Positions 4,001 through 43,285 of a DNA stretch of 64,000 nucleotides are shown one piece after another. Source of the stretch: Hyaloraphidium curvatum SAG 235-1. Its lineage: Eukaryota > Fungi > Monoblepharomycota. The position numbers were made by a program, and so were the translations under genes. Under the pieces are notes generated by a model, which saw only the letters and a list, made by a program, of their open reading frames with translations, was not told where the DNA came from and searched no databases. The number at the start of each line of letters is the position of its first letter. Positions within the stretch are counted from its first letter, which is position 1. The DNA lies in assembly GCA_025558095.1 (NCBI GenBank), contig JAIVFI010000008.1, positions 791,322 to 855,321 on the forward strand, given 5' to 3'.

Positions 4001-5313
4001 CGGGCAACTTTACCTTCGATACCAAGCTGGAGGACGGGACCTACGCATTCTGGTTCGAGTCTTTCGTGGGCACGTCCGAAGCCTACAAGATCGTCGTGGA
4101 CTCGACGGTGCCCGAGGACCCCGTGCTCAAGAGCGTCAATGGACAGGATCCCGGCTCGTTCGAAAAGAGCGACACGGCCGTGCTCACCTTCGAGGGCACC
4201 GGTGGACGCGGCTCCACCATCCACGTCTACGCCGACGACGGAAGCTCCAAGGTCAAGGTCGGATCCGGGCCGTGCGAAGGCGAGTTCAAGGTCACCACCG
4301 AATCGGTTGACGACGGCGAGTACGTCTACACGGTCCGCGCGGAGTCACCCGGCGGCAAGGAGTCGGAGGGGTCCGCCTCGGTCCTCGGCGGCAAGCCCGT
4401 GCGCATTTCCAAGCCCGAGGCCGGGCCTTCCAAGGGCTGCACGCTGTTCGAGGAGAGCTTCGCCGGCGCCTCGCTCGAGGGCCCGCAGTTCATCGCCCTC
4501 GGGGATGCCTGCCTCAGCGGGATGGAGTCGAGGACCAGGGATCCCTACGCCGAGAACAACGTGGTCGGATGCAACCGCGACTACCCCGTGGCGCCCAAGG
4601 GCTTCTTGCAGCTCACGTCGGCGGCCAACTGGCAGACGGGGGCGATCCTGCTGAACGACGCCATCCGCGGAGGGGACGGATTCGAGGTCACGGTCGACCT
4701 GTACCAGTACGGCGGCAACGGCGCGGACGGGATCGCCTTCTTCCTCGTGGACGGCGAGGCGACCCTGACGGAAGCCGGCGGATTCGGGGGCTCACTCGGC
4801 TACGCTCAGTACAACAACGGCCGCCTGCGCAACGGCGTCAGCAAAGGCTACATCGGCGTCGGCTTCGACGCCTTTGGCAACTTTGCAAAGGACACCGAGG
4901 GCCGCGGCTCGGCCACCAAGGGCGGCAACTGCCTCCCGTCCAACCGCACGGACCAGTACTCGCCCAACTCCATCACCATCCGCGGGCCGGGAGACGGCAC
5001 GCTGGGCTACTGCTGGCTCGGGACGAACGTGCTCCCGCAGTCGGGCACAAACCAGCGCTTCCTCCGCGCCGGCTCGGTCGAGAAGGGGCGGCGGACGGCG
5101 CGCATCACCCTGACCCCCGCGGAAGGAGGTGCGGCCAAGTTCCGCGTCGAGATGGACTACGGCGACGGTGCGGGGTACCGCACGGAGCACGAGCTGGCAG
5201 CTCCGACGCCGATCCCGAGCTCTTTCAAGATCGGCCTGACGAGCGGGACGGGAGCGCAGAACGACATGCATTTGGTCAGCAACCTGGTCGTGCGGAGCAG
5301 GAAATCATGTTAA
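1028..5313 (+). CDS. Large secreted modular protein: signal peptide, Cys-containing N-domain, acidic/Pro linker, 4x hevein-like chitin-binding (CBM18) domains, Thr-rich linker, Ig-like region, C-terminal legume-lectin-like (L-type/ConA) domain
   Basis: Signal peptide MRRPRFAAIALILALAP. Removing introns 2383-2443, 2754-2808, 3041-3097, 3369-3424 and 3486-3540 restores four GRCG..G.RC..G.CCS.WG.C...WCG.GCQ.G(F/Y)GKC repeats. The last exon 3541-5313 has GADGIAFFLVDG..GGSLGY..GVGFDAFGN. Confidence 0.85.
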
Positions 5314-5371
5314 GAGGGACTGGTGCACGTAGAATGCTGCAAGAAGATAGATGATATCAAGCACGTTCTGG

Positions 5372-6550
5372 TCAATCTGCCCCGTCGCCGACAGCGGACC
5401 CATTTTCCAGATCCGTCCCTTCATGGTCGTCATCGTCTTCGTCGATCTCAAACTCGATGGCGTCGAGCCTCGTCCACATCATGAGCTCCATCTCCGCCTC
5501 GTCCGTCAACCATTCCATCGGGTCAGCCCCCTTCACGAAAACCTTGGATCGCCGCGACGGATGGCCAAGGTGGTTGAAGACGGCCTCGATGTCTTCCGAA
5601 GGCAGACCGGGAAGGGCGCGGGAAAGCAAGACGCCTTCAAGGTAATCAGGGAGCTCCATCAGGATGCGTGTTGAGGTCCGCGCGTCACCGATCTCCAGCG
5701 TACGAAGGCTCTTCATCGCGCGCAGCACAGGCCATGCTTCGAGCAACATGTCGTCTGCGTCCGTCGCCTGGCCGAGATCAATTCCGAGATGAGAAAGCTC
5801 CAGGGTCTCGAACGAAACCAAGAGCCGGAGATCGCGTACGTCGAGCACCAAGCTGCGGAGCCGACTGACAACGGACGGGGGTACTTTGTCCAGCTCCGGG
5901 ATTTGACAGCCTGCGGTCCACGAGAGACTCCAATTGCTCAGATTGGTAGCCTTGCTCAACGAGCTCCACAGAGAAAGCACTGCAGCTTCTCCAACGTCCG
6001 TCTGAAAGCGAGACAGGAGCGTCGAAAGGCCTGGAGGGAACCAAAAGACCAGGCTGGTCGACGCGTCCTCCTGCTCAGACGCTACAACGGCGAATTGGAA
6101 GATCACGTGGTCCGACGCAGAGCGCGCAACCTCGTCCAAGCATGACTGGCCGAGCGGATTGCTGCAAATCATGAGCCTCACAAGAGATAGCTTAGGGGCA
6201 ACGGCTCGCAGGAAAGCAGGCTCCAACGACCCTTGAGGCTGCGAGTCGGAGGCATCGAGTTTGACCGCAGACACGAAACGAAGCTTCCCTGTGTCCAAAG
6301 GGTCATCCAGCAGCAGCTCGTAGTCCTTCTGTGAGCAAAGGTCCTCCCGAGAGTCGATAGGGGGAACGAAAAGGTAGAGCAAAGGCAAGGCGAGCTGCAA
6401 GCACGTCTTGCTCGCGAGCGAGAACTCCTTGAGCGTTCCACGGTCCAAGCGCTGGGCGACCAGGCCCAGGATTTCGGGAGGGACGACAGAGGGAGCTTCA
6501 GAGTCGTCTCGCTCCGCCGCCGGCGCAGGGCGCGGGCCGGGTTCGGCCAT
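5372..6550 (-). CDS. F-box (LRR-like) protein
   Basis: N-terminal VPPEILGLVAQRLDRGTLKEFSLASKTCLQLALPLLY F-box pattern, LxxLxL repeats downstream, acidic tail; intronless. Confidence 0.7.
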   Translation of the reverse strand: MAEPGPRPAPAAERDDSEAPSVVPPEILGLVAQRLDRGTLKEFSLASKTCLQLALPLLYLFVPPIDSREDLCSQKDYELLLDDPLDTGKLRFVSAVKLDASDSQPQGSLEPAFLRAVAPKLSLVRLMICSNPLGQSCLDEVARSASDHVIFQFAVVASEQEDASTSLVFWFPPGLSTLLSRFQTDVGEAAVLSLWSSLSKATNLSNWSLSWTAGCQIPELDKVPPSVVSRLRSLVLDVRDLRLLVSFETLELSHLGIDLGQATDADDMLLEAWPVLRAMKSLRTLEIGDARTSTRILMELPDYLEGVLLSRALPGLPSEDIEAVFNHLGHPSRRSKVFVKGADPMEWLTDEAEMELMMWTRLDAIEFEIDEDDDDHEGTDLENGSAVGDGAD

Positions 6551-7121
6551 GTTGGAGGTACGTCCACCGATGACTGGGCGCATCGGGGTTGGTGCCCAAA
6601 CGAATCGTCGCTGTGTGTCAAAATCAGAGTTCACGCACGATATTGAAAGGCGCGAGTCTCGGAAGCGCACTCGCGGCTCAAGTACTCCCGAGCCGGGCGC
6701 AAGGTTGGCTTCTCGGCCGGGCTGGTCGCGGAGCCGCAAGGTGGCTTTCGCCAACGGCAACGGCGCAGCGAATAGCTGTGCATCCCGCCGATCCGATCCG
6801 ATCCACCATACGGTCGTGCTAATTTGACATGGCCCTTCACATCCTGTGGCTAGGACTCCTTGAGTAATCCACCTTTGGACGGCCAGAGTGGCCCCAGGAT
6901 GAGGGCCATCCACGTGCAGCGAGCTGGATTGATCAAAAGAAGCCATTTACAGCCATCGTGCTTCAATAGATACAATCAATAGTCGCTGGAAAATGCCGCA
7001 AAAGAAGAGCGCGGCAGGCCGGAGGGGATCCATCGGACTTCGATTCGGGCTCGCCGGCGGCACCCGGGAGACAATCTTCTGAGCTCTACATCCGGCCCCT
7101 CTCTGCCGCCGCCGGATCACG

Positions 7122-8304
7122 ATGACGCCTCCTCCGTCGCGCGGCCGGCGTCTCTTGAACCATTCGAATGGCGCCGGACGCGTCTGCTTCATCACGGGAG
7201 CGTCATCGCCGCTGGGAATGGGCCACGCTTCCGCGGTGCTCCTCGCACGTGAAGGCGCGCGCGTCGTGGTCTCGGATCTCCCCAAATTGGAGGAACAGGG
7301 GCGAAAAGTCGTCGAAGAAATCGAGAAGGAGGGGGGAAAGGCCATTTGGGTGCCACTGGACGTTGCGGAAGAGTCCCAGTGGCCCGGAGCCATAGCGGCC
7401 GCGGAACAGGCGTTCGGGCCCCTGGACGTCATGGTCGCGAACGCGGGCATTGCGATGGAGTACGAGTCCTACACCGTCAATGAGGGCGACAGCCTCATGG
7501 ACCATCCCACGGCGGATTGGCGGAAGATTCTCGCCGTGAACCAGGTTGGTCGCCCGGATCCTCAACTTCTGTGCTGTCGCTCAGGAATCCACTCAATCAG
7601 GACGGAGTCTACTTTGCGATCAAGTACGGTGGCAAGTCGATGCTCAAGAACCCGGTCAAGGAGGGCAAATCCATAATCGTGATCTCCTCGACCGCCGGCT
7701 TCACCGGGCAGTTCGGCTTCGCGTGTGAGCTCGAATTCTGCGAAGAAGTCTTGCACTCTCTCAACCGGTTTCCGATGCCAGACACGGCCTCCAAGTTTGC
7801 TGTTCGGGGAATGACGAAGCGTGAGGATGCAGCAATGGACTACCTCGCGTTTGCTCATTGACCCGTGCTCAGACGCCGCAGCGTACATGGCGAGACATAA
7901 CATTCGCGTCAACAGCGTTCACGTTGAGTCCGTTCTCCGTCGGCTTGGTTCCACAGGCTGACGCCTCCCCCCCCCCCTTAGCCCAACTTCATCCGCACCT
8001 CGATCCCCGCCCCCTTCTTCCTTCGCGGCGGTCGCAAACCGACACGCGAGGAGATCCAGAAGGTCGTCACCAACCTCCAGAACGGGAGCCCGCAGCGCCG
8101 GTGGGGAACGCCCGAGGAGGTGGCCTACCTCATTGCGTACCTCGCGAGCGACGAGAGCAGCTTCACTACTGGTGCGTTCGCCCGCCCTTCGAGGCATGTA
8201 CAGTAGCTGATGCGCGTGCAGGGACCGAGCACGTGTTGGATGGCGGCTTTTTGACGGTCGCGGGGTACGGCGAGAACCCGTTCAAGGTCGAGAGCAAGCT
8301 CTGA
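7122..8304 (+). CDS. Short-chain dehydrogenase/reductase with C-terminal PTS1 (SKL)
   Basis: ITGASSPLGMG and ANAG motifs; YTASK and IRVNSVHP appear after removing introns 7545-7600, 7725-7781, 7821-7872, 7923-7981 and 8172-8221; ends FKVESKL*. Confidence 0.88.
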
Positions 8305-9535: not shown

Positions 9536-10333
9536 TCACTTTGCCTTCGCACGCTTCCTGCTTGATTGCTGGCGGCTCTGGGCGAAACTGGGATCCGCCA
9601 CGTCCGCATCGGCCGCCGTTTCCGCTTCCTCCATATGGACTTCCTCAAGTCCGACGACAGGGTCGTCCAGCTTTCCGAAAGCGTCCAAACCCAGCCTGCC
9701 AAACGATTCTTCAACGGCCGCCTTCAGCTTGGCCATCTCGGGCCCGATCGTCCCGCTTGCACCGAGCGCCGCCTCGAGCTCCACGATCTTGGCCACAACT
9801 CCCGCGGCAATCCCCCTGGCGGGACCGTACGCCACCCTCGCCGCGTACCGGAGGGCAGCGCGGACGTCGCTGCTCCCCAGGGGGTCCGCGGGGTTGAACT
9901 TTTCCTTGCCGGCCCAGATGCGCGAAAAGACCGCCATCGCGCGTTCGTCCGGCTTCCCGAGGCGGTACCACGACCCGGTCGCTGTCTTGATGAGGTTGCC
10001 CCTGGCGTCCGCGACCTCGGAGGTCGTCAGACCGCTTCTTTCCCCGCCCGTGATGCGGATCCGCTGGTCGTTCGTAAGCACCCAGCCGTCCCCGAGGTCC
10101 GTGACCTGCTCCCCGCCGGGCGGCAGCTCCATCGACCGCGTCGATGGCGGCGTGAGCATCTCCTCGCGGTCGGCGGCGAGGCCCCATTCCAGCTCGCCCG
10201 TGTTGAGGCAGTTCGGGATGGTGCGGACGCGTTTGGTGCCGCCCAGCCGAGCGCGCCGCGCGGGTTTCCCGGCGGGGGAAGCGGAGGCGGATTTGAGAAT
10301 GCCGCGGGGGCGTCGTCTGGGGGAGTCGGCCAT
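9536..10333 (-). CDS. Hypothetical protein with SANTA-like segment and C-terminal coiled coil
   Basis: GDGWVL..IRITG...TTSEVADARGNLIKTATGSWYRLG resembles the SANTA consensus; basic N- and C-termini. Confidence 0.5.
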   Translation of the reverse strand: MADSPRRRPRGILKSASASPAGKPARRARLGGTKRVRTIPNCLNTGELEWGLAADREEMLTPPSTRSMELPPGGEQVTDLGDGWVLTNDQRIRITGGERSGLTTSEVADARGNLIKTATGSWYRLGKPDERAMAVFSRIWAGKEKFNPADPLGSSDVRAALRYAARVAYGPARGIAAGVVAKIVELEAALGASGTIGPEMAKLKAAVEESFGRLGLDAFGKLDDPVVGLEEVHMEEAETAADADVADPSFAQSRQQSSRKRAKAK

Positions 10334-10775
10334 GTTCGGCTGCGATTCGGCCGGTGATGCGGAGGGGACGTTGAGAGTGGCGCTGACGCGTGGCGCGCGC
10401 GCTGGGCTCACAGTTCACGACGAATCCCGCCGGAAACGTGTGGCAAACTGGAGCGAAGATGATTTCGCAGTGATCCACTGCCCACAGGCGGGACTATATG
10501 CCTGGATCTGCCGGGGCGGTGCCGTCGGGGCTTCGGTCGGGTGTTCGCTATGTCAGTCGGGGCTTGTCCACGCGGTCGAGACGGTGCGGCGATCGAGCCC
10601 AAGCAGGTGGTGCTCTCGTCATTTCGAATACAGCAATCTCAGACTGTCTCTGGTGTTGTTCGACCTCCGCCTGTCGCTACTTCCATCGTTTGTTTCTTTA
10701 CCCGAGTCCGACGCGGCTTGACTTCCTTGCCCCTACTGCATTGGCCAATCCTGCCCCACATCGCGCCTCTGGATA

Positions 10776-10968
10776 ATGTCGTCCGACGCTGAAACGATCG
10801 CGAAAAAGTACCCTCCTCACTTTCGGCGGCTATTCACGGCGGGTCTCGCCGAGCCGGGGCACGGCTCCGCGGCCAACCTGCACACCGCGTCGGCCGGTTT
10901 CGCGCTCTCGGACGCGCCGCTGCTCGCCGATTTGGCATGCGAAATCACTTTGGAACACGGTGACCCGC
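10776..10968 (+). pseudogene. Truncated 5' paralog of the MYND gene at 25004-25591
   Basis: MSSDAETIAKKYPPHFRRLFTAGLA..AANLHTASAGFALSDAPLLA..EITLEHGDP matches MASYAESVVRKYSPPYRRLFTAGLA..AANVHAASAGFALVDAPMLA..EIALEHGDP, then homology stops; 5' flanks also similar. Confidence 0.8.
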
Positions 10969-11150
10969 GGAAACCGGCGTCGGCGGCCACGATACACGCG
11001 CTGCATCATCGAGGGCGGTTTGCCCCTGCACGATCAAACATCACGGCCGGCCAGCAACGCTTGACGCCGAGCCTCCGATGTCGAGCTAAACTGTCGCAGG
11101 ATCGATGGCCGCGAGCGTGATGGCCGCCGTACATCAGGGGGACTCCGAGC

Positions 11151-13628
11151 TCATCCTCCCGCATCGGGCAGCCCATCCGGCCCCCCGCCATCCACGGCGC
11201 CCGCTTCCCTTCCCTCCCCCGCCGCCACCCTGAGCATCACCATCATCCGTAACGCCGCCTCCTCCGGCGGCTCCTCGTCCGTGTCCTCCTCCTCGTCCGG
11301 CGCCAGCATCGACCTCGCCGGGTACTCCTCCCGCGCGTAGGTCTCGAACACCCGCACCTCGGGGTGGTACTTGACCCTCCGCCGGGGCTTGGCCGACGAC
11401 GCCTGCGAGTCGCCGTCGCTGTCGGTCCGCGCGAGCTTGCCCAGGTTCCACCGCCTCCCCGGCTCCCACCCCGCCGTCTTGGCGACCCCGCCGAACTCGG
11501 GGATCTCCAGCAGCGGGTCCCCGCCGTCCCCTTCCCCGGCGGCCGCCGGATCGTGGTCCTGCCCGCCCTGCCTCCTTACCGCGCAGATCCAGCACGCCCC
11601 CTCCCCCGCCGTCCCCCCGGCATGCGGGCACCGCGCCGCGACCGCCCGCGCGAGGGTGAGTATCTGCACGTCGGCCCTGGCCAGCCTGACCTCGTCCCCC
11701 TCGAGGATGCTCCGGAGCACCACCTTGGCGTCCTGGAACGGCGGCAGGTCCGACGCCCCCAGCAGCTCGAGGCACGCGCGCACGTCGGCGGCCATGGCCT
11801 CGTACACGGCCACGGCGCGGGCCTGCGCGTTGGGCGCGGCGCGCGCGGCGATGTGGCGGAAGCGCTTGAGCACGAGGAGGTGCAACCAGCTGGCGGAGAT
11901 GGCGGCGCGGCACGCGATCCCGGTGAAGTAGAACAGCCCCAGCCTTTGCGGGCCGAGATCCGAGACGAGCGACCGCGCCTGCCGCGATATGACCATGGCG
12001 TGCCGCGACGCCTCGCCGAACGAGGCGGAGGAGAACCACACGGTGCGGAGCATGTCGGATTCGTCCTCGGGAGGGGGAGGGGGTTCCGCGGGCTCGGGCG
12101 AGGCGTGCGCGGCGGCGCGGGCGGCGGAGCGGCCCCAGCCGTCGAGGTCCTCGAAGAGCTCGGGGGAGCAGAGCGACATGCTCATTTGGCGGGAAAGGAT
12201 GAGCAAACTGTGGGAAGGAAGGTGAGGAAGGTGAACGATCCAGGTCAGCACGACACGCGAACGGAACACCCCAAGGCCAACCCACCCCAAAACGGCCATG
12301 CGCTGCGGCACGTCCCAGTCTGGCAGGGTTCCCGCCAGATCGGCGATGTGCCCCGTCTCCCCCGCCGTCGCCACGCCCGCCGGCAGCGCCCTCCTCAGGC
12401 ACCTCACCGCCTCGTACAGGTGGTCCCGCCTCCGGATGGCCTCGGGCAGGAACGGGTTCCGCGAGAGGCGCTCCAGATACGCCGCGTCCATCCCCGCCAG
12501 GCCCGAGCCGGGCTGCCGCACCGCGCGCGACAGGCTGCCGGCCTTTTCCGCGACCTCCTTTGCCAGCAGCACGTCCAAGACAGAGAGCTCCGCCCCGGCG
12601 AGCCAACGGCGAAACTCGATGATCCGCGTGGCGGCGTACAGCGTCATCTGGTGCAGGTAGCTGTGTCCTATCGAGGCGATCGCCGAGACGTGCGTGGCGA
12701 GCATCCGGTCCCGCGCGCGGTTATCTGACGGGATAGGGAGCAGTGGGTCGATCCAGCCAAGGTAGTCCCGCGCGGGTGGGCCGTAGTATTCCGGGCGGAG
12801 CAGAAAGGCGGGGATCGGGCCGTTGGGCGGGCGGTCGGTGGGTGCAGGGACGGAGGCGACGAGGGCGGCGGGGAGGTTGGCCGGCACGCCCGGGTGGTCC
12901 CGCGGCGGGTTGTGCAGCGTGGGCATGTCCAGGGCCATCGAGACGGTGCAGTCCTGGGCAAAGGCTAGCCAGTAAACGCCGATCCAGGCGGCGGTCAGCA
13001 GAAGGTCGTCCAGGCCCCAGTATCCGCGCCGGATATCGTGTGGCCGGCGGTGGCGCGGCACCCCCGTGGCGCCCAAGATGTCGTACATGTGCCGCAGCAT
13101 GGCGCGGCCGCCCCGGTTGCGGTCCATACTGTGGTCGGCGACGCCCGCGACGACCGAAAGGGCAAACAGCAGTGCGAGGTTGGCCATCGAGTGCAGGCCC
13201 TCTCCGGGGCGCTTCTCCTGTGTCCGAGACGACTCCCCGGCGGCGTGTGCCGCCTCCGCGTCCGCCCAGAAGCGTGCAAGCTCGGCGGTCAGCAGCCTGC
13301 GTGCCCGGTTCTCCAGCCGCGGCACGGCGTCCGCCAGCGGCATGCCCTTGGCGTCCCCGTCCCCCGGCGGGAGTGGCGCACACGCGGCGGCGCCCGTGGC
13401 CAGCAGCTTCGCCGCCCCCGCCCAGTCCAGCGCCGCGCAGAGCACCGGCGCCCCGAGGAACTGCCGCCAGCGCGGGTCCGCCGCCGCGACACCGAACCGC
13501 GCCGCGCGGTACGTCGCCGCCGACATGTTGAGTGTGCCCCGCGGGAGCCCCGAAAGCACGACGTCCGCAAAGGCGCGCGATGTGGCATCGGGCGGTTCCC
13601 ACTCTGCGGCGGGGGCCGCCATCGGCAT
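11151..13628 (-). CDS. Fungal TF middle-homology-region-like protein with C-terminal CPH..CxxC and PP1-docking-like motif (copy B)
   Basis: YWLAFAQDCTVSMALDMP resembles the MHR core; 78-nt in-frame intron 12208-12285; C-terminal CPHAGGTAGEGACWIC and RRVKYHPEVRVFETYAREEY. Confidence 0.65.
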   Translation of the reverse strand: MPMAAPAAEWEPPDATSRAFADVVLSGLPRGTLNMSAATYRAARFGVAAADPRWRQFLGAPVLCAALDWAGAAKLLATGAAACAPLPPGDGDAKGMPLADAVPRLENRARRLLTAELARFWADAEAAHAAGESSRTQEKRPGEGLHSMANLALLFALSVVAGVADHSMDRNRGGRAMLRHMYDILGATGVPRHRRPHDIRRGYWGLDDLLLTAAWIGVYWLAFAQDCTVSMALDMPTLHNPPRDHPGVPANLPAALVASVPAPTDRPPNGPIPAFLLRPEYYGPPARDYLGWIDPLLPIPSDNRARDRMLATHVSAIASIGHSYLHQMTLYAATRIIEFRRWLAGAELSVLDVLLAKEVAEKAGSLSRAVRQPGSGLAGMDAAYLERLSRNPFLPEAIRRRDHLYEAVRCLRRALPAGVATAGETGHIADLAGTLPDWDVPQRMAVLGWVGLGVFRSRVVLTWIVHLPHLPSHSLLILSRQMSMSLCSPELFEDLDGWGRSAARAAAHASPEPAEPPPPPEDESDMLRTVWFSSASFGEASRHAMVISRQARSLVSDLGPQRLGLFYFTGIACRAAISASWLHLLVLKRFRHIAARAAPNAQARAVAVYEAMAADVRACLELLGASDLPPFQDAKVVLRSILEGDEVRLARADVQILTLARAVAARCPHAGGTAGEGACWICAVRRQGGQDHDPAAAGEGDGGDPLLEIPEFGGVAKTAGWEPGRRWNLGKLARTDSDGDSQASSAKPRRRVKYHPEVRVFETYAREEYPARSMLAPDEEEDTDEEPPEEAALRMMVMLRVAAGEGREAGAVDGGGPDGLPDAGG

Positions 13629-25710: not shown

Positions 25711-27093
25711 TTACGAACTGTAAATAGCCTGCAGAAGCTGCATGACTGCGTCCGGTGCCTGGCGGCACTTGTTGATCTGCGCCTGCACGGCCCTGGCCCA
25801 AACTTCGCTCCCTCGGAGCCCGTTGGTGTCCGCAAAGGCCTTTAGAGAGGCGACACGCTGTGCAGCGTCGGCAACGATGGCGCGACGGTCGGTCAATCCC
25901 GTCACGAATCCCGCAGCGAACCGTTCGTCCCCATGGACCGCGAACCCCAGCTCGGGCCGCTGGGGGTCGAGGTGCAGCGGCCACTTGCAGCTGGAGATCA
26001 TGAATCCCAGGAGGGGGGCATAAATGCCCGCTTCGTGCAGATGGGCAAACACCTGGCGGGCCGCATCGGGAGAGACGACGTCCCTGCGATCATCGCTTCC
26101 GGGATCGGGGCGCGTGAACCAGCGCAGCATAGCAAAGATTACGTCTCCTTGGTTTCGGGATTGAGCAGAAGAGCGTTAAGAACCGAAGCCAGGACGGCGT
26201 GAGGCTTCGCGAAGAAAGGGTGGAGGACAAAGGATGCAAGCATGGCCCCAAGACAACGCACACCGCCCGCCTTCGAAAGGAGGAAGAACAAGTTTGCCAA
26301 AGCAGGGATTCTCTCCTTCGGATCCAAGTCTGCTCTGCTGAGAAGATCTCGGCCAAGATAAACCATTTCTCTGTGAGCCCAGAAACATAAGGTACTCCGG
26401 GGAATCCAACAAGAAGCCCGTCCCATTAATCCAGTGGTGGACGATCGCGGTGGTCATCCATTGCTGAGCAAACGGAAGCTGAAGCCTCTTTAGGACTTCG
26501 GAATGCGGAACGGAAATCGGCCTGAGCAACCGTCCCAATCGAACGTAGTGAGCGCGGGGCGCGTGTTCGCCGATCGGGGAAAGCAAGTTGAGGTGCCGCA
26601 CCACCAGCGCAACATCGGCGCCCCCGGCCGACATCCCGTCCAAAAGATCTCCGGCCCGGTCCGGGTCCAAGACGTGGACTATCGTTCCGTTCCTCAAAGT
26701 GAGCCTCGATTTGTAGCGCCGAATGGCCGAAAAGGTGATGATGGACTCCACCTGGACGCCGGCAAGGCGGAGAATGCGACCCACGACCTCCGCATCGAGC
26801 GGTTTGTCCCACTCCTCGCTCCACCCGTCGGTGGCCCGCTTGCCCTCCCAATCTTCCTCCGCCACCCGCTCGGGCCCCCTCAAGCTCTCGACGAAGCTGA
26901 AGAAAGTATCGGGATCCTTGTCGACGGTGAGCACGTGCTTCACTCGGCGGAGCAAGGCCCAGGAAGCTTCGGGAAGGACGGTGCGGCACAGGAGCTGCAA
27001 GCCGAACAGGTCCCCAAGGGAGAGCGAATCGTACGAAAGAATGGCCCTCAGGATCTCCGGCGGGAGGTCCTGAAGGCCTGGAGAGGGGTCCAT
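25711..27093 (-). pseudogene. F-box protein gene with apparent frameshifts in its 3' half
   Basis: LQDLPPEILRAILSY..LGDLFGLQLLCR F-box; coding-like text continues in other frames (26139-26380, 25711-26130) with no clear intron signals. Confidence 0.5.
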
Positions 27094-27205
27094 GAGCCGT
27101 GACGAGTGCTGCTTGCTAACTAGCTGGTGTTGCGCGGCATCGGCTGCGGCGGGGGGCAAAGCAGGGATCGCGGACAAACGCAGATCGGCGGACGGCGTGA
27201 AGCAG

Positions 27206-28946
27206 ATGCCCGATCCCACGCTCCTCTCGGCCGGAGAGATACAAAGCCTCGTTGCTTCCGGCCAGCTGACGTACTCGGATGTCGCGGGGAGCTTCCTTGC
27301 TCGGATCAGGGACTGCAACGGGCTCGTGAACGCAGTCATGGAGGTCAACCCGCGCGCGCTCGAAGACGCCAAGAAAGCGGACGAGGCGGCGCGGAAGGAC
27401 CCGTCGCTGTGCAAGGCGATCTTTGGGATCCCGGTGCTCGTCAAGGATAATGTGATTTGCTTCGGGCTGGAGGACGAGGGGGAGCGGAACGCGGGGCCGG
27501 CGGGAGACATGCCGACGACGGCGACCGCGGGCTCGTTGGCCCTCGTCGGGGCCCGCTGGAAGCGCAGAGCTGACATCGCACGGCGATTGGCGGACGCCGG
27601 GGCGGTGCTAATTGCGAGCGCCAACATGTCCGAGTGGGCCAACTTCCGCTCGTCGGCCCAGCTGGACGGCTGGTCTGCGCGCGGGGGAAAGACGCACAAC
27701 CCGTACGACATGGGGAAGGGAGCTTTCGGACCGACGGGGAGCTCGTCCGGGAGCGGAGCAGGGCTGGCTTCGCGGTTCGCGACCCTGGCCGTCGGCAGCG
27801 GTGGGCAGCCACCTTGTCGCCCGCGAAGTAGCCATTGCTTGACGTCTCGCAACCGCAGAAACCGACGGCTCCATCATCATGCCCTCGTCGCGCTGCGCCG
27901 TGGTCGGGATCAAGCCCACTGTAGGCCTCGTTTCGCGCGCGGGGATCATACCCATCTCGCCCACCCAGGACACCGCGGGACCCATGGCCCACGACGTCGC
28001 CGGCGCTGCGGCGCTCTTGGACGTGCTGGCGGGCCCGGAGCCCAGGGATCCGGCGACGCTGCACTGCGGCCGCGCTCTGCCCGCTGGAGGTTTCGCGGCG
28101 GCTGCTGCTTTAGGTCGGGAGCGCGGGTTCGCGGGGCTCCGGATCGGGTTGGACAAGGGCATGCTGGAGCGATGCCCGCGGAACGAAAGGGAGGCGGCGG
28201 AGCTCGCGGTGCGGGAGATGAGGGCCGCGGGCGCCGAGATCGTGGACGTGGAGCTGCTCGTGCACGACGAGATGGAGAAGCTCGGCAAGATCGAGGAGCT
28301 GAAGCTCACCGTTGAGTTCCGCGAAGCTCTTGATGGGTGGGCGAAATGAATAAGGCCGCCCGTGACTGAGAAAGCTGACGGCGGAGCTCCACAGCTTCCT
28401 CTCTTCCAACCTGGATCCCTCCTCACCGGCGTCGGTGCCCCGAACCATGGCATCCGTCATCGCCTTCAACGAAACCACGCCCGCGGAGATGACCTACGAC
28501 CAGAAGAAGCTCGTTCTTTCTCAAGCCTTTTCGTCGGCGGCCTCTCCGAGCGGCCGGAGAACGTGGGACGACGCCAGGGCGCTGGCGGCCCGGTTGGACG
28601 AGGTGGCGGCCCGCGAGCGGCTGGACTGCTTCTTCACGAGCCCATGGGGCGGGTGCACGACCATCTGCGGGGTGCTGGGGTATCCCGTCGTCACTGGTGG
28701 GTTTCCGAGCGGCCGCGCGACCGCTCTCCTCCCTAAGCGTGGTTCCAAGTGCCGTACGGATTCAGCTCCAAGACCGGATGCCCGTTCGGGGTGTGTTTCT
28801 TTGGCGTGGCGTGGACCGACGCCGTGCTCGTGCGGGCTGCCGCTGCGTTGGAGCAGCACGTTGTGCGGAGACTGGGGAAGCAGATCTGCCGCGAACCCGT
28901 GGACTTTGCAAAGTGGACGAAGCCCGCGGCGGGGTCCAAGCTTTAG
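27206..28946 (+). CDS. Amidase-signature family amidase with PTS1 (SKL)
   Basis: GIPVLVKDN, ANMSEWANFRS, GSSSGS, and ETDGSI..P...VVGIKPTVGLVSR after intron 27801-27858; two further introns (~28337-28394, 28698-28749); ends AAGSKL*. Confidence 0.9.
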
Positions 28947-29025
28947 CGTACAGGGTAGAGCTCCGACTCTATAGACATAGGCCGCCCATCGGCACGTTGC
29001 TCATATCACGTTCAACTCTTTTTCC

Positions 29026-30443
29026 TCAGAGCCTGCTCCCCTGCCCGCCCTTCAGCTCCCTTGGGCACTCCTTGTGCGGGAACCACTTGGCGTACAGCTT
29101 CTCGAACCTGCCCTCGGCCACCAGCTCCCCGATCGCCTTGTCCACCGCCAGCCTGACCCTGTCGTTGCCGTAGCGGAACGCGACGCCCCACTTCCACCCC
29201 GTCTGCGCGGTCCACGCGATCCGGTAGGGCGACTCGGGCCCGACGAGGTGGCCAAAGGCGCAGTCGTCGTCGATCACGGCGTCGACCTCGCCGGCGTCGA
29301 GGGCGGCCATCATCTCGCCCAGCACGTTGTCGTTGGCGCCGTCGAACGGCACGGCGGTGGAGCCGTATGTGGCGTAGGTCTCGGCGAGCTTGTAGTTGGT
29401 CGAGCCGGTGATGGCGGCGATCTTCTTCCCGGCGAGGTCGGTGAAGCCCCACACGGGCGAGTCCTTCTTGACCAGGACCTGCTCGTCCACGACGATGTAC
29501 GGCCGCGTGTAGTGGTAGTACTTTTGCCGCTCCGGGGTGATGGCGCTCCCGCAGAACTGCGCGTCGACCTTGCCCGAGAGCACCGAGGGCTTGAACTTGT
29601 CCCAGTCGGCAAACACCCACTCGATGCCCAGGCCCATGTGGTCGGCGACCATCTTGGCCGCCTCGGGCTCGTACCCCGAGCGCCGCTGGGTCTTGACGTC
29701 GTCGGTGCGGAACACGGGCCAGGCGGTGAAGGCCGCGCACACAAAGGTGAGCTTACCCGGGTTGACGAGGGGCAGGGCCGACGGGTCGGAGGGGTCGGCG
29801 TCGGGGTGCTCGATCTCGAGCGGGGCAGGGCGGCCCGGGAACAGTTTCGACCACATGTCCTTCATGGCCGTGAGCGAGCGGCGCTCGACAATGCCGCGGA
29901 GGCGGTGGTGGTCCTCCTCAGCGGTCTCATCCGAGCCGCCGAACGCCGCGGGGAGGTCGACGTACTTGGGGAGCCCGTCGGTGATGTCCTTGATGCCCGA
30001 GGTGTAGAAGATGTGGGCCGACGGCTTGAAGCGGGGGTCCGTGACGCGGCCGTCGGCGCCGTGGTTGGGAGTGGTGAACATGTCGAGGTCTGCGAGGGGA
30101 TCAGTGGTTTGACGGGGGAAGGTGACCCAGCAGGCAACCCACAAATGGCGTCCTGCTTCAGGTGGTGCAGCTTGGCGTAGACCTTGCTGCCGCACGTTTT
30201 GCAGGTCAGCCGCTCCTCCTTGCCGGTCGTGTAGGACGACAGGTTGTCGGCGCCGCGGACGACTTTGACGTCGCCGGCGTTGAACCCGCACAGCGTCGCG
30301 TAGTCCGCGCTCAGCGCCCGGCGGCACTGGCTGCAGTGGCAGTACACCACGAAATTGGGCGGCGCGGGCACGTGCACCTCGCAGGCCTTGCAGAGGCACT
30401 GCGCGACAGCCGCGGGGCGCGCCGACGCCGCGACGAGCGCCAT
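29026..30443 (-). CDS. Fusion of a GFA/CENP-V zinc domain and a bacterial family-3 amino-acid solute-binding domain, with PTS1 (SRL)
   Basis: CLC..CHCSQCRR..CKTCGS and HIFY..DGLPKY (GFA); intron 30090-30142; then GKLTF..GYEPE..GLGIEWV..WD..GKVD..AITPERQKYYHYTRPY..DLAGKKIA..GST..GEVDAVIDD (SBP_bac_3); ends QGSRL*. The true start may lie further upstream. Confidence 0.82.
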
Positions 30444-30924
30444 CGCGGGAAGGGAGAGCGGGAGGCCGGCGGGCGAGAGGGGCAGAAGACGGAGGCCGGC
30501 TCGCAGGTGGAGGAGGTCGCCGATGAGGCCCAGCAGTCGCTGCAGCACGGGCGGCAGAATCGTCTTGATCGTCGATTGAAGAGGTGGACGGGCTGGTGCG
30601 GACCCCCACCCTCGATCAATCGGCGCCACGTCAGCTGGGCCAGCGATATGGAGCATGAGCTGGAGCGGCATGGAAGCTGCGGAAGCTATTGGAGAAGCAG
30701 GTTTTTGGTGGATTGACTGATTGACTGGCGGAGCTGGATGCGGGCCAGCTGCAGGCGCCAAGGTCCGAGAACTGCAGGAAGTGGTAAGCTGCACCATACG
30801 AGGACTTTTGTGCTGAGTTTCTCATTTAGTAAGATTCTGATGCCGATGACATTGAATCAATGAAATTGGGTGTGTGCAGGGAGCGGTTCTCGCCCCTGCC
30901 GTCCTGACCGGGAGACACGCCGCG

Positions 30925-33147
30925 ATGCCCGCCTCGCTCCCTGCGTCCTCCGTGCGCGTTCCGCCGTACTCGCGCGAAACTGCCGAGCGGCAGATGGCGG
31001 ATCTGGCCGCGGCGCGGGCGCGGGCAACTTTCGACCCGGAGAAGATGACCGAAGTCATCTACGACCCCGAGACGCGTCGGAAGCGCGCTCAGGCGCTGGA
31101 AATCGTTCAGAACGAAGAGATGCTGGTCAAGCTGATCGATGACTGGCCGTTTCTCGGGGATTTCGAGCGTCGGCAGCGCACCTGGCCGGCCATGAAGCGG
31201 CTCGCAGAGATCCAACTCGGCCGAGGACTGTCGCCCGACGACATGCTCTACGTCTTGAACCTGCTCGGCGTGCTCACACCGCTCTTCAACCACCAGCAGT
31301 CCTTCCAGGCCGCGAACCTGACCAGCCACGCGTCGGACGAGCAGCTGGCACACTGGGGCCCGCTCGGCGAGTCGTTCCGGTTCTGGGGCTCCTTCGCGCA
31401 GACGGAGCTGGGCCACGGCTCGGCGGTATCGGACATCGAGACCACGGCCACATACGACCCGGCCGCGCAGGAGTTCGTGCTCGACACGCCGACCCTCTCG
31501 AGCACGAAATGGTGGATCGGCGCCCTGGGCACCTACGCCACGCACTCCCTGGTCATGGCGCAGCTCATCGTCGGCGGCCAGCGCAAGGGAATCGCCCCCT
31601 TCCTCTTTCAGGTCCGCAACATGGACACGCACGAGCCCCTCCCGGGCATCTACGTCGGCGAGATCGGCCCCAAGCTCGGCCCCGTCGAAAACGGCTGGCT
31701 TCGCCTGGACAAGGTCCGCGTGCCCCTCTCTTCCCTCCTCTCCCGCAACCTCCGCGTGCTCCCGGACGGCACCTTCCTCCGCCCCAAGGACTCGAAGCTC
31801 CTCCTCGGGGGCATGCTCGTCCGCCGCACCGAAATTACGGCGTCGTCGGCGCGCGCGCTGGCAAAGGCGTGCACGGTCGGGGTACGGTATTGCGAGGTCA
31901 GGAGGCAGAACAAGGGCGTCGGGGAGGAGGCGAAGAAGGGCGGGGAGGCGGCGGTGATGGGATATCCGATGGTCAAGATGAGGATCCTGCCGGCGCTGGC
32001 CGCGGCATACTCGTTCGCGTTCGTGGGCAAGTACCTCGTGGGCCTGCTCAACGGGTACCGGACGAGGATGATGGCGGGGGACGAGGGCGCCGCGGGGATG
32101 CTGAACGACTTCCACCCGACCCTGAGCGGCCTCAAGGCCTACTGGTGGGCCCTGCTCCCGTCTCCCCCATTTTCACCACTCAACCCCGCTCCCTCTCAGC
32201 ACGACTACCGCCGCCGATGGCATTGAGGACATCCGCCGCTGCCTCGGTGGGCACGGCTACTCCCACGCTTCGGGGCTCGGCCTGCTCTACGCTCAGTGGT
32301 CTGTCTTTACGACCGCCGAGGGCGAGGCGGTGCTCATGACCCAGCAGACGGCGCGGTACCTTGCCCGGCTGGCGGGGGAGCTGAAGAAGGGCGGCGGGGA
32401 GGGGAAGGTAAAGGGGAACGTGGGGACGGCCTATCTCGCGACGCTGTGGGAGGAGGAGGCCCCGTGCGCGGCCCGAAACCCCGCCGAGTTTGCCAACCCG
32501 GCGATGCAGGTCGCCCTCTTCGCCCACCGCGCGCGTCGGCAGGTCCGCGAGCTCGTGGCCGCGCTGGACGCCTCCCATGGGGAGCTCGGCCTCTGCGCCG
32601 CGCAGGCGTTCGCCGCCTCCACCGCGCACACGCAGCACCTGATCGTCGCGGTGATGTGGAACAAGGTCGACGAGCTGCGGAGGGAGGGGACGGACGGGAA
32701 GGTGGTGGAGGTGCTGGGAAAGCTGGCGGCGCTCAACGGGGCGTTCCTGCTGGCCAAACACTTCGGGGAGTGGCTGGAGGACGGGCACCTCGATGGGGCG
32801 CAGATCAAGGTCGTCCGTCAGCTCGGTGGGTTCAATCCTCACTGCCTCCACATGACTGCTGACGCCCCCGATCCCGCGCAGTCCACGACATCAACGACGC
32901 CGTCCGCCCTGAAGCCGCCGCCCTCGTCGACGCCTGGCAGTTCTCGGACCTCGAGCTGCAGTCCCAGCTCGGCCGCGCGGACGGCAACGCGTACGAGGGT
33001 ATGTTCCTGTGGGCGCTGCGGGACCCGGTGAACAAGGGGATGGGGGGGAAGGCGGTGTTTGATGGGTATGGAGAGTTCCTGAGGCCGTTGATCACGGGGG
33101 AGGTGGCGGCGGAGGCAAGGAGGGCGAGGGATGGGCCTAAGCTGTGA
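30925..33147 (+). CDS. Peroxisomal acyl-CoA oxidase
   Basis: FAQTELGHGS, TKWWIG, GEIGPKLG..ENG, RRCLGGHGY, TAEGE, LGRADGNAYE; two short introns (~32145-32199, ~32826-32881); ends RDGPKL*. Confidence 0.93.
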
Positions 33148-41186: not shown

Positions 41187-43007
41187 CTACATCTTCGACT
41201 CCCCGCCCGTCCTTTGACCACCACCTTTGACATCGCCTTCATCGCGATCCGCTCTCGCATCCTTCCCCTCCGGGGCTGTTTTACCCTCGCCGCTTTCCCC
41301 GCTAACATCCCCCTCGGCAGGCTCCGGCTCCAGCTCCGGTTCCGGCATCAGCACCCCCTTGTCCGCCCTCACCACCACCCCCGGGTTCATCACCCCCACC
41401 GGATCGCAACCCTCCTTCTCCCTCGCCACCCTCTCCACCCACCCCCCCCCGGCCCCCGTCCTCGCCAGCCTCCCCCTCGCCGCCACCCTGCCCCCGGCCT
41501 CGACGATCGCCGCCGCGCACTTCGCCCTGAGCTCGCCCCACTGCTTCGCCATGCCCGCGGGGGAATCGTACCGCGCCGGGCCGGCGAACGCCAAAGAGGG
41601 GTACGCCTGCCGCCGCCCGATGCGCGAGACGCGGAGGGTCCACAGCGCGCCTTCCCGCTCCGCGACCCGCATGGCGCCGTCGATGCAGGCCGCCAGTTGT
41701 GCCCAGGGGCACGAGAACTCGAGGGTGCCGGAGACGATGCCGGAGAGGAGGAGGGCGTCGCGGAGGTACGGGAGGGTGGTGGGCGTCGGTTGGCCGGGAG
41801 GGGGGTCGGCGAGGACGTCCGAGGGCGGCGGGAGGACGCCGGCGTGGGAGCGGAGGAGGCGCGAGGCGGTGCCGGCGGCGGCAGAAGTGGGGAAGGCGAG
41901 GCGGATGGTGGTGCGCGGGTCGGTGCCGAGGGGGCGGCCGGCGAGGATGGCGACGGGGGAGGGGTCGGTGAGGAGCATTTCGGTGGGGTTGAGGCCGGAT
42001 TCGGCGATCGCTGGGTCGGGGAATGGGCGGTGTGAGTCGAGGAGGATCAGTGGTCGGGGCGAAGGAGGTCGCCCACCCTGGAGCGCCGCTAGACCCTTTT
42101 CCAGCGTCTCGAACAGGAACGTGCAGGAAGCCCGCTGGGTGGCGCGCGGCTGGAGACGCAGGGTGACCTCGGTGATGATCCCCAAGGCCCCTTCAGAGCC
42201 CACGAACACGTCCTCCCCATCTTGGACCGCCACGTCGCGGACCCCGGCCGGCGTCGCCACCTTCAAAGCCACCGCGTGCTGGGCCACATGCTCGCCGTCC
42301 GTGTGGGAGAACTGCGGGTACGCCCGCGTGGCGATCCAGCCCCCGACCGTCGAGTACTCCCACGCCTCAGGCAGCGCCGCGAAGGTGAGCCTGCCGGATG
42401 TCCGCTGCTCGAGCTGCGCGAGGAACAGCTGCCCCGTCGCGCCGGCCTGCACGCGCGCCGTCATTGTCCCTTCGTCGATGGCCAGCACCCGGTCCATGTG
42501 GCGCGTCAGGTCGACCGCGATGGCGCCGGCCAACGCGTTCGGCATCGGCTCCACGGCGCCGCCGCCCGAGGTCCCGCCGCCGAACGGAACCACGTGGACG
42601 CAGTTCTCCGCGCACCAATCCAGGAGCTTGATCACGTCGTCCTCGGATTTCGGGTAGGCGACCAGGTCGGGCGGCGAGGGGAAGTGCATGCAGCCGCCCC
42701 GGAGCACGTCCTCGGGGCCACATCCGTAGTTGTGCCGCAGCCGATCGAGGCCGGTCGACGAGCACATCGCGGCGACATTCGGCGGCAGCGACGACGCGTC
42801 GATTCGGGGCGGTCTGAGTCCCCTCGCCGTCTCGACGAACGCCGACGGCCACGGCCGGGGAACGCGCGTCCGCGGGGCACGGAGTGCCGGTTTGGCCTCG
42901 CTCAGCGCCCGCCCCACGGCCAGCACGGCGGCAGGGGGGACGCGGTCGATGCCGTCCTCGCGGCCGAAGCCCCAGTTGCTCCGCTCGGGCGGGCGCTTGG
43001 GGGGCAT
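41187..43007 (-). CDS. FAD-linked oxidase, alkyl-DHAP-synthase-like, degenerate C-terminal catalytic region; ends SKM
   Basis: NWGFG, PDLVAYP, VPFGGGTS, STVGGWIATR, GSEGALGIITE, DPVGVMNPG; in-frame intron near 42013-42078. Confidence 0.8.
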   Translation of the reverse strand: MPPKRPPERSNWGFGREDGIDRVPPAAVLAVGRALSEAKPALRAPRTRVPRPWPSAFVETARGLRPPRIDASSLPPNVAAMCSSTGLDRLRHNYGCGPEDVLRGGCMHFPSPPDLVAYPKSEDDVIKLLDWCAENCVHVVPFGGGTSGGGAVEPMPNALAGAIAVDLTRHMDRVLAIDEGTMTARVQAGATGQLFLAQLEQRTSGRLTFAALPEAWEYSTVGGWIATRAYPQFSHTDGEHVAQHAVALKVATPAGVRDVAVQDGEDVFVGSEGALGIITEVTLRLQPRATQRASCTFLFETLEKGLAALQGGRPPSPRPLILLDSHRPFPDPAIAESGLNPTEMLLTDPSPVAILAGRPLGTDPRTTIRLAFPTSAAAGTASRLLRSHAGVLPPPSDVLADPPPGQPTPTTLPYLRDALLLSGIVSGTLEFSCPWAQLAACIDGAMRVAEREGALWTLRVSRIGRRQAYPSLAFAGPARYDSPAGMAKQWGELRAKCAAAIVEAGGRVAARGRLARTGAGGGWVERVAREKEGCDPVGVMNPGVVVRADKGVLMPEPELEPEPAEGDVSGESGEGKTAPEGKDARADRDEGDVKGGGQRTGGESKM

Positions 43008-43119
43008 TTTATTCGGCACGGGTGCGCTTAGAGGTCCCAGCGGCACGGTTACATACGGCACGGTTGGAAGAGACACCAGGTCCAGAGTGTCGTTGGGGCC
43101 AGAAGAAACACAACACGAT

Positions 43120-43285
43120 CTTCTTTGTCTGCTTTGTCTGTTGTAAGGCACAGACGCCCGGTGGACGCGGGCCCGCGACAGACGGGGACGTCAAGCTCTC
43201 GCGGTGCGGCGGTTGCAAGGTCTCACGGTACTCCAAGGCGTGCCAAGTGAAGGTCACAAGGACGAGTGCATCAAAGGATACGCGT
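43120..43285 (+). pseudogene. Degenerate MYND finger relic
   Basis: CFVC..KLSRCGGCKVSRYSKACQ then a frameshift to GHKDEC; lacks the Cys of YCS and the Trp. Confidence 0.6.

Follow-up and report, generated by a model that had tools for sequence, protein, structure and literature searches.

The 64-kb window analyzed here, the whole stretch from positions 791,322 to 855,321 of contig JAIVFI010000008.1 of the fungus Hyaloraphidium curvatum SAG 235-1, holds between its positions 27206 and 33147 three neighboring genes whose products end, after splicing, in tripeptides of the type 1 peroxisomal targeting signal (PTS1): an amidase ending in SKL, a protein fusing a GFA domain to a solute-binding protein (SBP) domain and ending in SRL, and an acyl-CoA oxidase (ACOX) ending in PKL. 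The stretch is GC-rich (61-70%) and carries eukaryotic genes with short introns. A Pfam scan of open reading frame (ORF) pieces placed an Amidase domain within 27092-28349, GFA and SBP_bac_3 domains on the minus strand within 29026-30797, and four acyl-CoA oxidase domains within 30874-33031. An earlier note on this DNA, made from the letters alone, had described the same arrangement, and the spliced transcript contigs, together with the NCBI models for the amidase and ACOX, bear it out: the three genes are physically adjacent, the amidase and fusion genes converging with 79 bp between their stop codons (coordinates below) and the fusion and ACOX genes diverging across the roughly 480 bp that the note had given, 481 bp when measured between start codons. 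The features are as follows, in positions of the window.

27206..28946, plus strand: amidase gene, predicted member of a Pam-like clade; four exons (27206-27800, 27859-28336, 28395-28696, 28750-28946), 523 aa
27801-27858, plus strand: GT..AG intron of the amidase gene
28337-28394, plus strand: GT..AG intron of the amidase gene
28697-28749, plus strand: GT..AG intron of the amidase gene
28935..28946, plus strand: SKL codons and stop codon of the amidase (PTS1); protein end ...AAGSKL
28947..29025, no strand: 79-bp spacer between the convergent stop codons, under unbroken cover by a merged contig (one piece, 28749-30089)
29026..30443, minus strand: GFA + SBP_bac_3 fusion gene; exons 30443-30143 and 30089-29026; 454 aa, protein end ...GQGSRL
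29026..29799, minus strand: bacterial-type solute-binding domain with a 9-residue SRL tail and stop codon, from comparison with bacterial relatives
30090-30142, minus strand: GT..AG intron of the fusion gene
30444..30924, no strand: divergent intergenic region of 481 bp, from the fusion start codon to the ACOX start codon; at most about 340 bp untranscribed (30569-30908)
30925..33147, plus strand: ACOX gene, predicted ACOX1 type; exons 30925-32144, 32200-32825, and 32882-33147; 703 aa, protein end ...DGPKL
32145-32199, plus strand: GT..AG intron of the ACOX gene
32826-32881, plus strand: GT..AG intron of the ACOX gene
33136-33144, plus strand: PKL codons of ACOX, the C-terminal tripeptide

A single public run (X1), entered in its record as RNA only on a guess and with an unstranded contig set, was the sole run containing the stretch. 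Its contigs precisely omit the six introns and are therefore transcript assemblies, and no alternative joints occur among the X1 contigs aligned to 27206-33147. For the amidase and ACOX, the models agree in every residue with the NCBI H. curvatum proteins P0061 and P0181, respectively, and the 454-aa length of the fusion protein is counted from 30443, the first ATG that its transcript contig contains; this contig extends to 30568. The ACOX contig spans 30909-33134, and because it stops there, 13 nt short of the end of the stop codon, the evidence for the last four ACOX codons comes from the open frame and from the NCBI model. The locus comprises three separate, expressed, intron-bearing H. curvatum genes. 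One X1 contig covers the fusion gene from 30568, continues across the 79-bp spacer and the amidase gene, and reaches about 1.5 kb upstream of 27206, an interval with a weak F-box-like gene on the minus strand. That merged contig spans neighboring genes, so their transcripts abut or overlap; a single mRNA is not implied. A bacterial-type scan for terminator and promoter consensus sequences found none in the 79-bp spacer.

SKL and SRL are canonical PTS1 signals and the strongest of them. The note's description of PKL as a variant also stands, PKL having been proven experimentally in fungi: it suffices for import in Histoplasma (PMC13343957) and is given as a functional PTS1 in human, yeast, and Penicillium (PMC3709128). 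PKL recurs, moreover, among ACOX homologs, in which the C-terminal tripeptides were SKL (55), AKL (22), SRL (9), and PKL (3), and the ACOX orthologs of related organisms end in AKL, AKL, GKL, and ARL. Each of the three spliced frames closes on its PTS1 tripeptide, the last 13 nt of ACOX lying outside the contig, and no competing N-terminal secretion or mitochondrial signal was found in the amidase or the fusion protein, as judged from where the homolog alignments start (amidase) and from the start of the GFA domain at about residue 14 (fusion). Pex14 was found in the H. curvatum genome. Because each product carries a C-terminal PTS1, each is most likely imported by Pex5, which would take the amidase, the fusion protein, and ACOX into the peroxisomal matrix through these tails. 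We regard a peroxisomal location of all three as quite probable.

The ACOX has the four Pfam domains of its family (PF14749, PF02770, PF22924, and PF01756, being the N, middle, C-alpha1, and C-terminal domains), and rat ACOX (1IS2) matches it with an E value of 4e-109 and with the catalytic EGE (Glu) motif aligned. It resembles rat and human ACOX1 (PDB 1IS2 and 7Q84) in its near whole-length alignment, four-domain make-up, EGE motif, and C-terminal PTS1, and differs from them in ending in PKL, where SKL is the commonest ending among the sampled homologs, and in an N-terminal extension of about 22 residues. These features mark it as an ordinary ACOX1-type first enzyme of beta-oxidation; the H. 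curvatum genome has at least five loci for ACOX, this one included.

The amidase belongs to the Amidase signature family (PF01425), and among solved structures the peptide amidase Pam (5AC3/1M21) is nearest to it, matching over the whole length with an E value of 7e-72. The catalytic Lys (KDN), cis-Ser (GSSSGS), and Ser (ETDGSI) line up with those of Pam, and the enzyme is predicted to be of the Pam (peptide C-terminal amidase) type rather than the FAAH type. Its likeness to Pam of Stenotrophomonas maltophilia (PDB 1M21, 5AC3) thus extends over the full length and the three motifs, whereas the H. curvatum protein differs in lacking a signal peptide, in carrying a 16-residue insertion, and in its SKL tail. 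The insertion is in frame and lies directly after the catalytic Lys (KDN; residues 83-98, window 27452-27499); its presence in the spliced transcript shows that it is not an intron. The H. curvatum genome contains at least 15 loci with the amidase signature.

An exhaustive search of 1.8 billion representatives found nothing more than about 46% identical to the amidase, and no ortholog of it. In a FastTree phylogeny the protein groups with sequences from chytrids (Blyttiomyces, Obelidium, Rhizophlyctis), from other fungi (Savitreella, Hypsizygus), and from a plant (Selaginella); its branch is long (1.55), which leaves its exact position unsure. Several homologs carry twin-arginine translocation (TAT) or endoplasmic reticulum (ER) signal peptides, and the relatives in the chytrid, fungal, and plant clade have an ER signal peptide or none; the H. 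curvatum protein begins where the alignment with its homologs begins and has no N-terminal signal peptide. None of the 128 other representative homologs ends in SKL, and a single one has a PTS1-like ending (PKL). As no sampled relative ends in SKL, the tag would be a lineage-specific gain, and the amidase is best described as a probable fast-evolving member of a Pam-like clade that otherwise consists of secreted or cytosolic proteins. A recent bacterial origin, proposed when a word search returned only bacterial names, many of them TAT-bearing, was rejected on the exhaustive search, the cluster names, and the FastTree tree.

The fusion protein combines PF04828 (GFA/CENP-V, E value 1e-13) with PF00497 (SBP_bac_3). 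Database searches for it used the separate exons, and the joined 454-aa model was compared only with the loci of relatives. The GFA part contains nine Cys (16, 18, 21, 35, 37, 40, 52, 81, and 84), including CxC, CxCxxC, and CxxC arrangements, which we take to be assignable to two zinc sites; its stand-alone relatives have no PTS1 ending. The SBP part is 40-45% identical to a family of signal-less bacterial SBP_bac_3 proteins of about 232 aa from Gaiellales and metagenomes, which end in ...YPL where the fungal protein has nine further residues ending in SRL. The solved structures closest to it are polar amino-acid binding proteins, and it shares the SBP_bac_3 fold family with the bacterial binders AncQR (4ZV1), the GlnPQ SBD (6H30), and LAO-binding protein. 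In contrast to the bacterial SBPs, the fungal domain sits behind a GFA zinc domain in a eukaryote, has no transporter partner, and bears a PTS1 tail. It thus has the fold of ABC-transporter SBP family 3 as an internal domain of a fusion, and on this make-up it should be treated as a putative binding or enzyme-like domain, not as a transport component. The whole protein would be a fungal GFA zinc domain joined to a bacterial-type amino-acid-binding domain with a short added SRL tail.

Three genomic contexts of the signal-less bacterial family were located.

L012, 5107-6699: context of a signal-less bacterial SBP_bac_3 gene
L046, 3824-5696: context of a signal-less bacterial SBP_bac_3 gene
L047, 453-4679: context of a signal-less bacterial SBP_bac_3 gene

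In two genomes the bacterial SBP relative directly follows a PhyH-type dioxygenase, and in a third it lies among a glutamine-synthetase-like gene, a C26 hydrolase, and an aldehyde dehydrogenase. By analogy, these contexts hint at amine or amino-acid metabolism, and the bacterial proteins resemble cytosolic binding or enzyme-like components of amine catabolism. A joint transfer of amidase and SBP out of a single bacterial operon was considered and rejected, as the surroundings of four SBP and two amidase relatives have nothing in common. A third X1 contig is 90-95% alike over the SBP region 29264-30064, with flanks unlike those on either side; the assembly holds no such close SBP paralog, its best other SBP-like locus (C9:729682-730479) having 37-48% identity.

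Conserved synteny in related genomes, which the earlier note had named as a check on the cluster, was looked for and not found. The nearest relative with data is that of run SRR26194948, in which the fusion gene is conserved, its GFA and SBP parts being 72-82% identical to those of H. curvatum. At this locus (L011) a kinase gene lies upstream of the fusion in unchanged orientation; it is 45-60% identical to the kinase of the window, which was the best-identity match (56-58%) in the reciprocal search with the relative's kinase. No ACOX and no amidase gene is present within 8 kb upstream or 4.7 kb downstream of the fusion at L011. A C2H2 zinc-finger gene stands between kinase and fusion there, unrelated to the gene beside the kinase in the H. 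curvatum window, and a transcription-factor-like gene follows downstream of the fusion. The ACOX ortholog of the same relative (60-74% identical) is on a different contig from the fusion, and its neighbors are a second ACOX, an amine oxidase, and a glycosyltransferase. Neither fusion nor amidase lies alongside the ACOX orthologs at loci L023, L024, L025, L055, and L056; besides the contig of this relative (L023), these loci represent three contigs, two of them from a second run and one, present as two copies, from a metagenome, and on these neither gene occurs within 3-10 kb.

Linkage of the trio is thus not kept in the related genomes. Since fusion and ACOX are apart in the relatives, and neither has the amidase beside it, the trio would be specific to H. 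curvatum, having either been assembled in H. curvatum or dispersed in the relatives, and the neighborhood appears to be lineage-specific rather than an old conserved cluster. At L023, the two ACOX genes lie head to head (5054-7569, minus strand, and 9635-11974, plus strand), about 2 kb apart and adjoining an amine oxidase gene, and both encode proteins ending in AKL. One protein-kinase query gave more than 140 matches across the H. curvatum genome, with close runs on contigs C13, C17, C43, and C46.

How far the adjacency exceeds chance depends on how common PTS1-like ends are. Such ends were found at 2 of 124 coding-like ORFs in a genome sample of 200 kb drawn from 20 random places, a sample that makes the base rate imprecise, and at 4 of 53 in the window. 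From these the expectation by chance is roughly 0.04-0.6 triplets within 6 kb per genome, depending on the base rate chosen. The earlier note had named the genome-wide PTS1 frequency as a yardstick for chance adjacency; by it, fewer than one triplet is expected per genome, and the adjacency of the three genes is suggestive, not decisive. It is also possible that PTS1 genes tend to cluster genome-wide.

Elsewhere in the window, a short-chain dehydrogenase gene (7122-8304, plus strand; adh_short in its first exon) lies 19 kb from the trio, and its last coding piece reads ...LDGGFLTVAGYGENPFKVESKL, ending in the PTS1-like SKL. A FAD-linked oxidase gene (41187-43151, minus strand) with FAD_binding_4 and a weak FAD-oxidase_C domain has an open frame, read unspliced, that ends after a low-complexity tail in ...GGESKM, a PTS1 variant.

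Taken together, these results are best explained by three PTS1-tagged genes whose products have a destination in common and whose neighborhood is lineage-specific, with neither a pathway nor regulation demonstrably in common; we hold this explanation with moderate confidence. That the three are peroxisomal proteins is likely from their tails; we infer import itself, as well as any functional coupling among the three. The following observations weigh against this explanation. Three PTS1 genes in a row are uncommon by the rough expectation given above; two further PTS1-like gene ends, those of the short-chain dehydrogenase (SKL) and the FAD-linked oxidase (SKM), occur in the same window; the fusion ortholog of the relative ends in GRL, a tripeptide outside the canonical PTS1 set; and the lack of synteny rests on few relatives and short contigs.

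The more ambitious proposal of the earlier note was a co-regulated module for amide catabolism. As a true peroxisomal catabolic cluster, it would involve cleavage of a fatty amide or N-acyl amino acid by the amidase, activation of the acyl part and its oxidation by ACOX, and binding or processing of the released amine or amino acid by the SBP-GFA protein. The PTS1 tags on all three adjacent genes fit such a cluster, as do the divergent layout of fusion and ACOX, with no more than about 340 bp of untranscribed DNA between them, the resemblance of the SBP to polar amino-acid binders with bacterial relatives in amine and amino-acid catabolic contexts, the gain of the amidase tag in this lineage, and the chance expectation of less than one triplet per genome. 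Against it, the linkage is missing in relatives that have both the fusion and an ACOX ortholog; Pam, the closest characterized amidase, removes peptide C-terminal amide groups and is not a fatty-amide hydrolase; the trio includes no acyl-CoA synthetase; and the bacterial relatives of the amidase do not adjoin those of the SBP. The promoters give no link either: CCTCGG is absent from both, a motif with 131 sites in the 64-kb window and too common to inform; the yeast oleate response element (ORE) is absent from both; and 8- to 11-mers are shared between them at chance level. To our knowledge, a Pam-type amidase, a GFA-SBP protein, and ACOX do not occur together in any known pathway. Because the linkage is unconserved, the amidase is of the peptide-amidase type, and neither promoters nor bacterial contexts connect the genes, the reading of the locus as one amide-catabolic module is not supported, and we consider such a cluster unlikely.

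A known case for comparison is that of fungal biosynthetic gene clusters with peroxisomal steps, such as those of the siderophore enzymes SidI, SidH, and SidF. Those enzymes are likewise peroxisomal through PTS1 variants, PKL among them, and their clusters serve a known pathway with targeting signals conserved across fungi (PMC3709128), whereas the trio has no linking pathway and its linkage is absent in relatives.

A narrower form of coupling would confine co-regulation to the fusion and ACOX, expressed from a bidirectional promoter, with the amidase as an unrelated neighbor whose transcript abuts the 3' end of the fusion. The two genes could be co-regulated through the 481-bp divergent promoter, in which GGCCCAGCTG-like elements occur about 105-110 bp apart; of the promoters of the locus, this one alone has them.

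30527-30536: GGCCCAGCTG-like element
30632-30641: GGCCCAGCTG-like element
30742-30751: GGCCCAGCTG-like element

The 64-kb window holds 19 such elements, and the three observed in the 481-bp region compare with 0.14 expected there, for a motif that was chosen post hoc and has no known binding factor. The mean word depths of the two contigs are similar (219.5 and 190.8) in the single run, depth being a poor measure of expression. With fusion and ACOX not adjacent in the relatives, and with the motif picked after the fact, this divergent pairing seems to us improbable as an account of the locus.

Nor do we give much credence to a further possibility, that at least one tag is non-functional and its protein cytosolic, most likely the fusion or the amidase with its new tail, so that the trio would be in part a coincidence of tripeptides. 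In this GC-rich genome PTS1-like tripeptides close about 1-1.6% of ORFs, whether through composition or for other reasons; the GRL of the fusion ortholog and the dearth of PTS1 endings among amidase relatives, where the one PKL end among 128 is the sole case, point the same way. Yet SKL and SRL are the strongest canonical signals, in the amidase and the fusion they stand on short tails past the homolog-aligned region, neither protein has a competing N-terminal signal, and Gly at -3 occurs in an ACOX ortholog as well (GKL).

Least probable of all, and offered as speculation, is that ACOX, the bacterial-derived GFA fusion, and the re-targeted amidase form a peroxisomal module of the H. curvatum lineage that degrades an amide-linked lipid or N-acyl amino acid, as one case of a genome-wide clustering habit.

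On the explanation preferred here, three PTS1-tagged neighbors with a common destination, the parts of the locus come from ordinary families, and its value lies in the lineage-specific re-targeting of the amidase and in the unusual tagged GFA-SBP architecture rather than in a demonstrated pathway. The locus offers a concrete place to test peroxisomal gene clustering in an early-diverging fungus. If the tags work, it would illustrate the re-routing of proteins into peroxisomes, in one case of an amidase from a family of otherwise secreted or cytosolic enzymes and in the other of a bacterial-type solute-binding domain.

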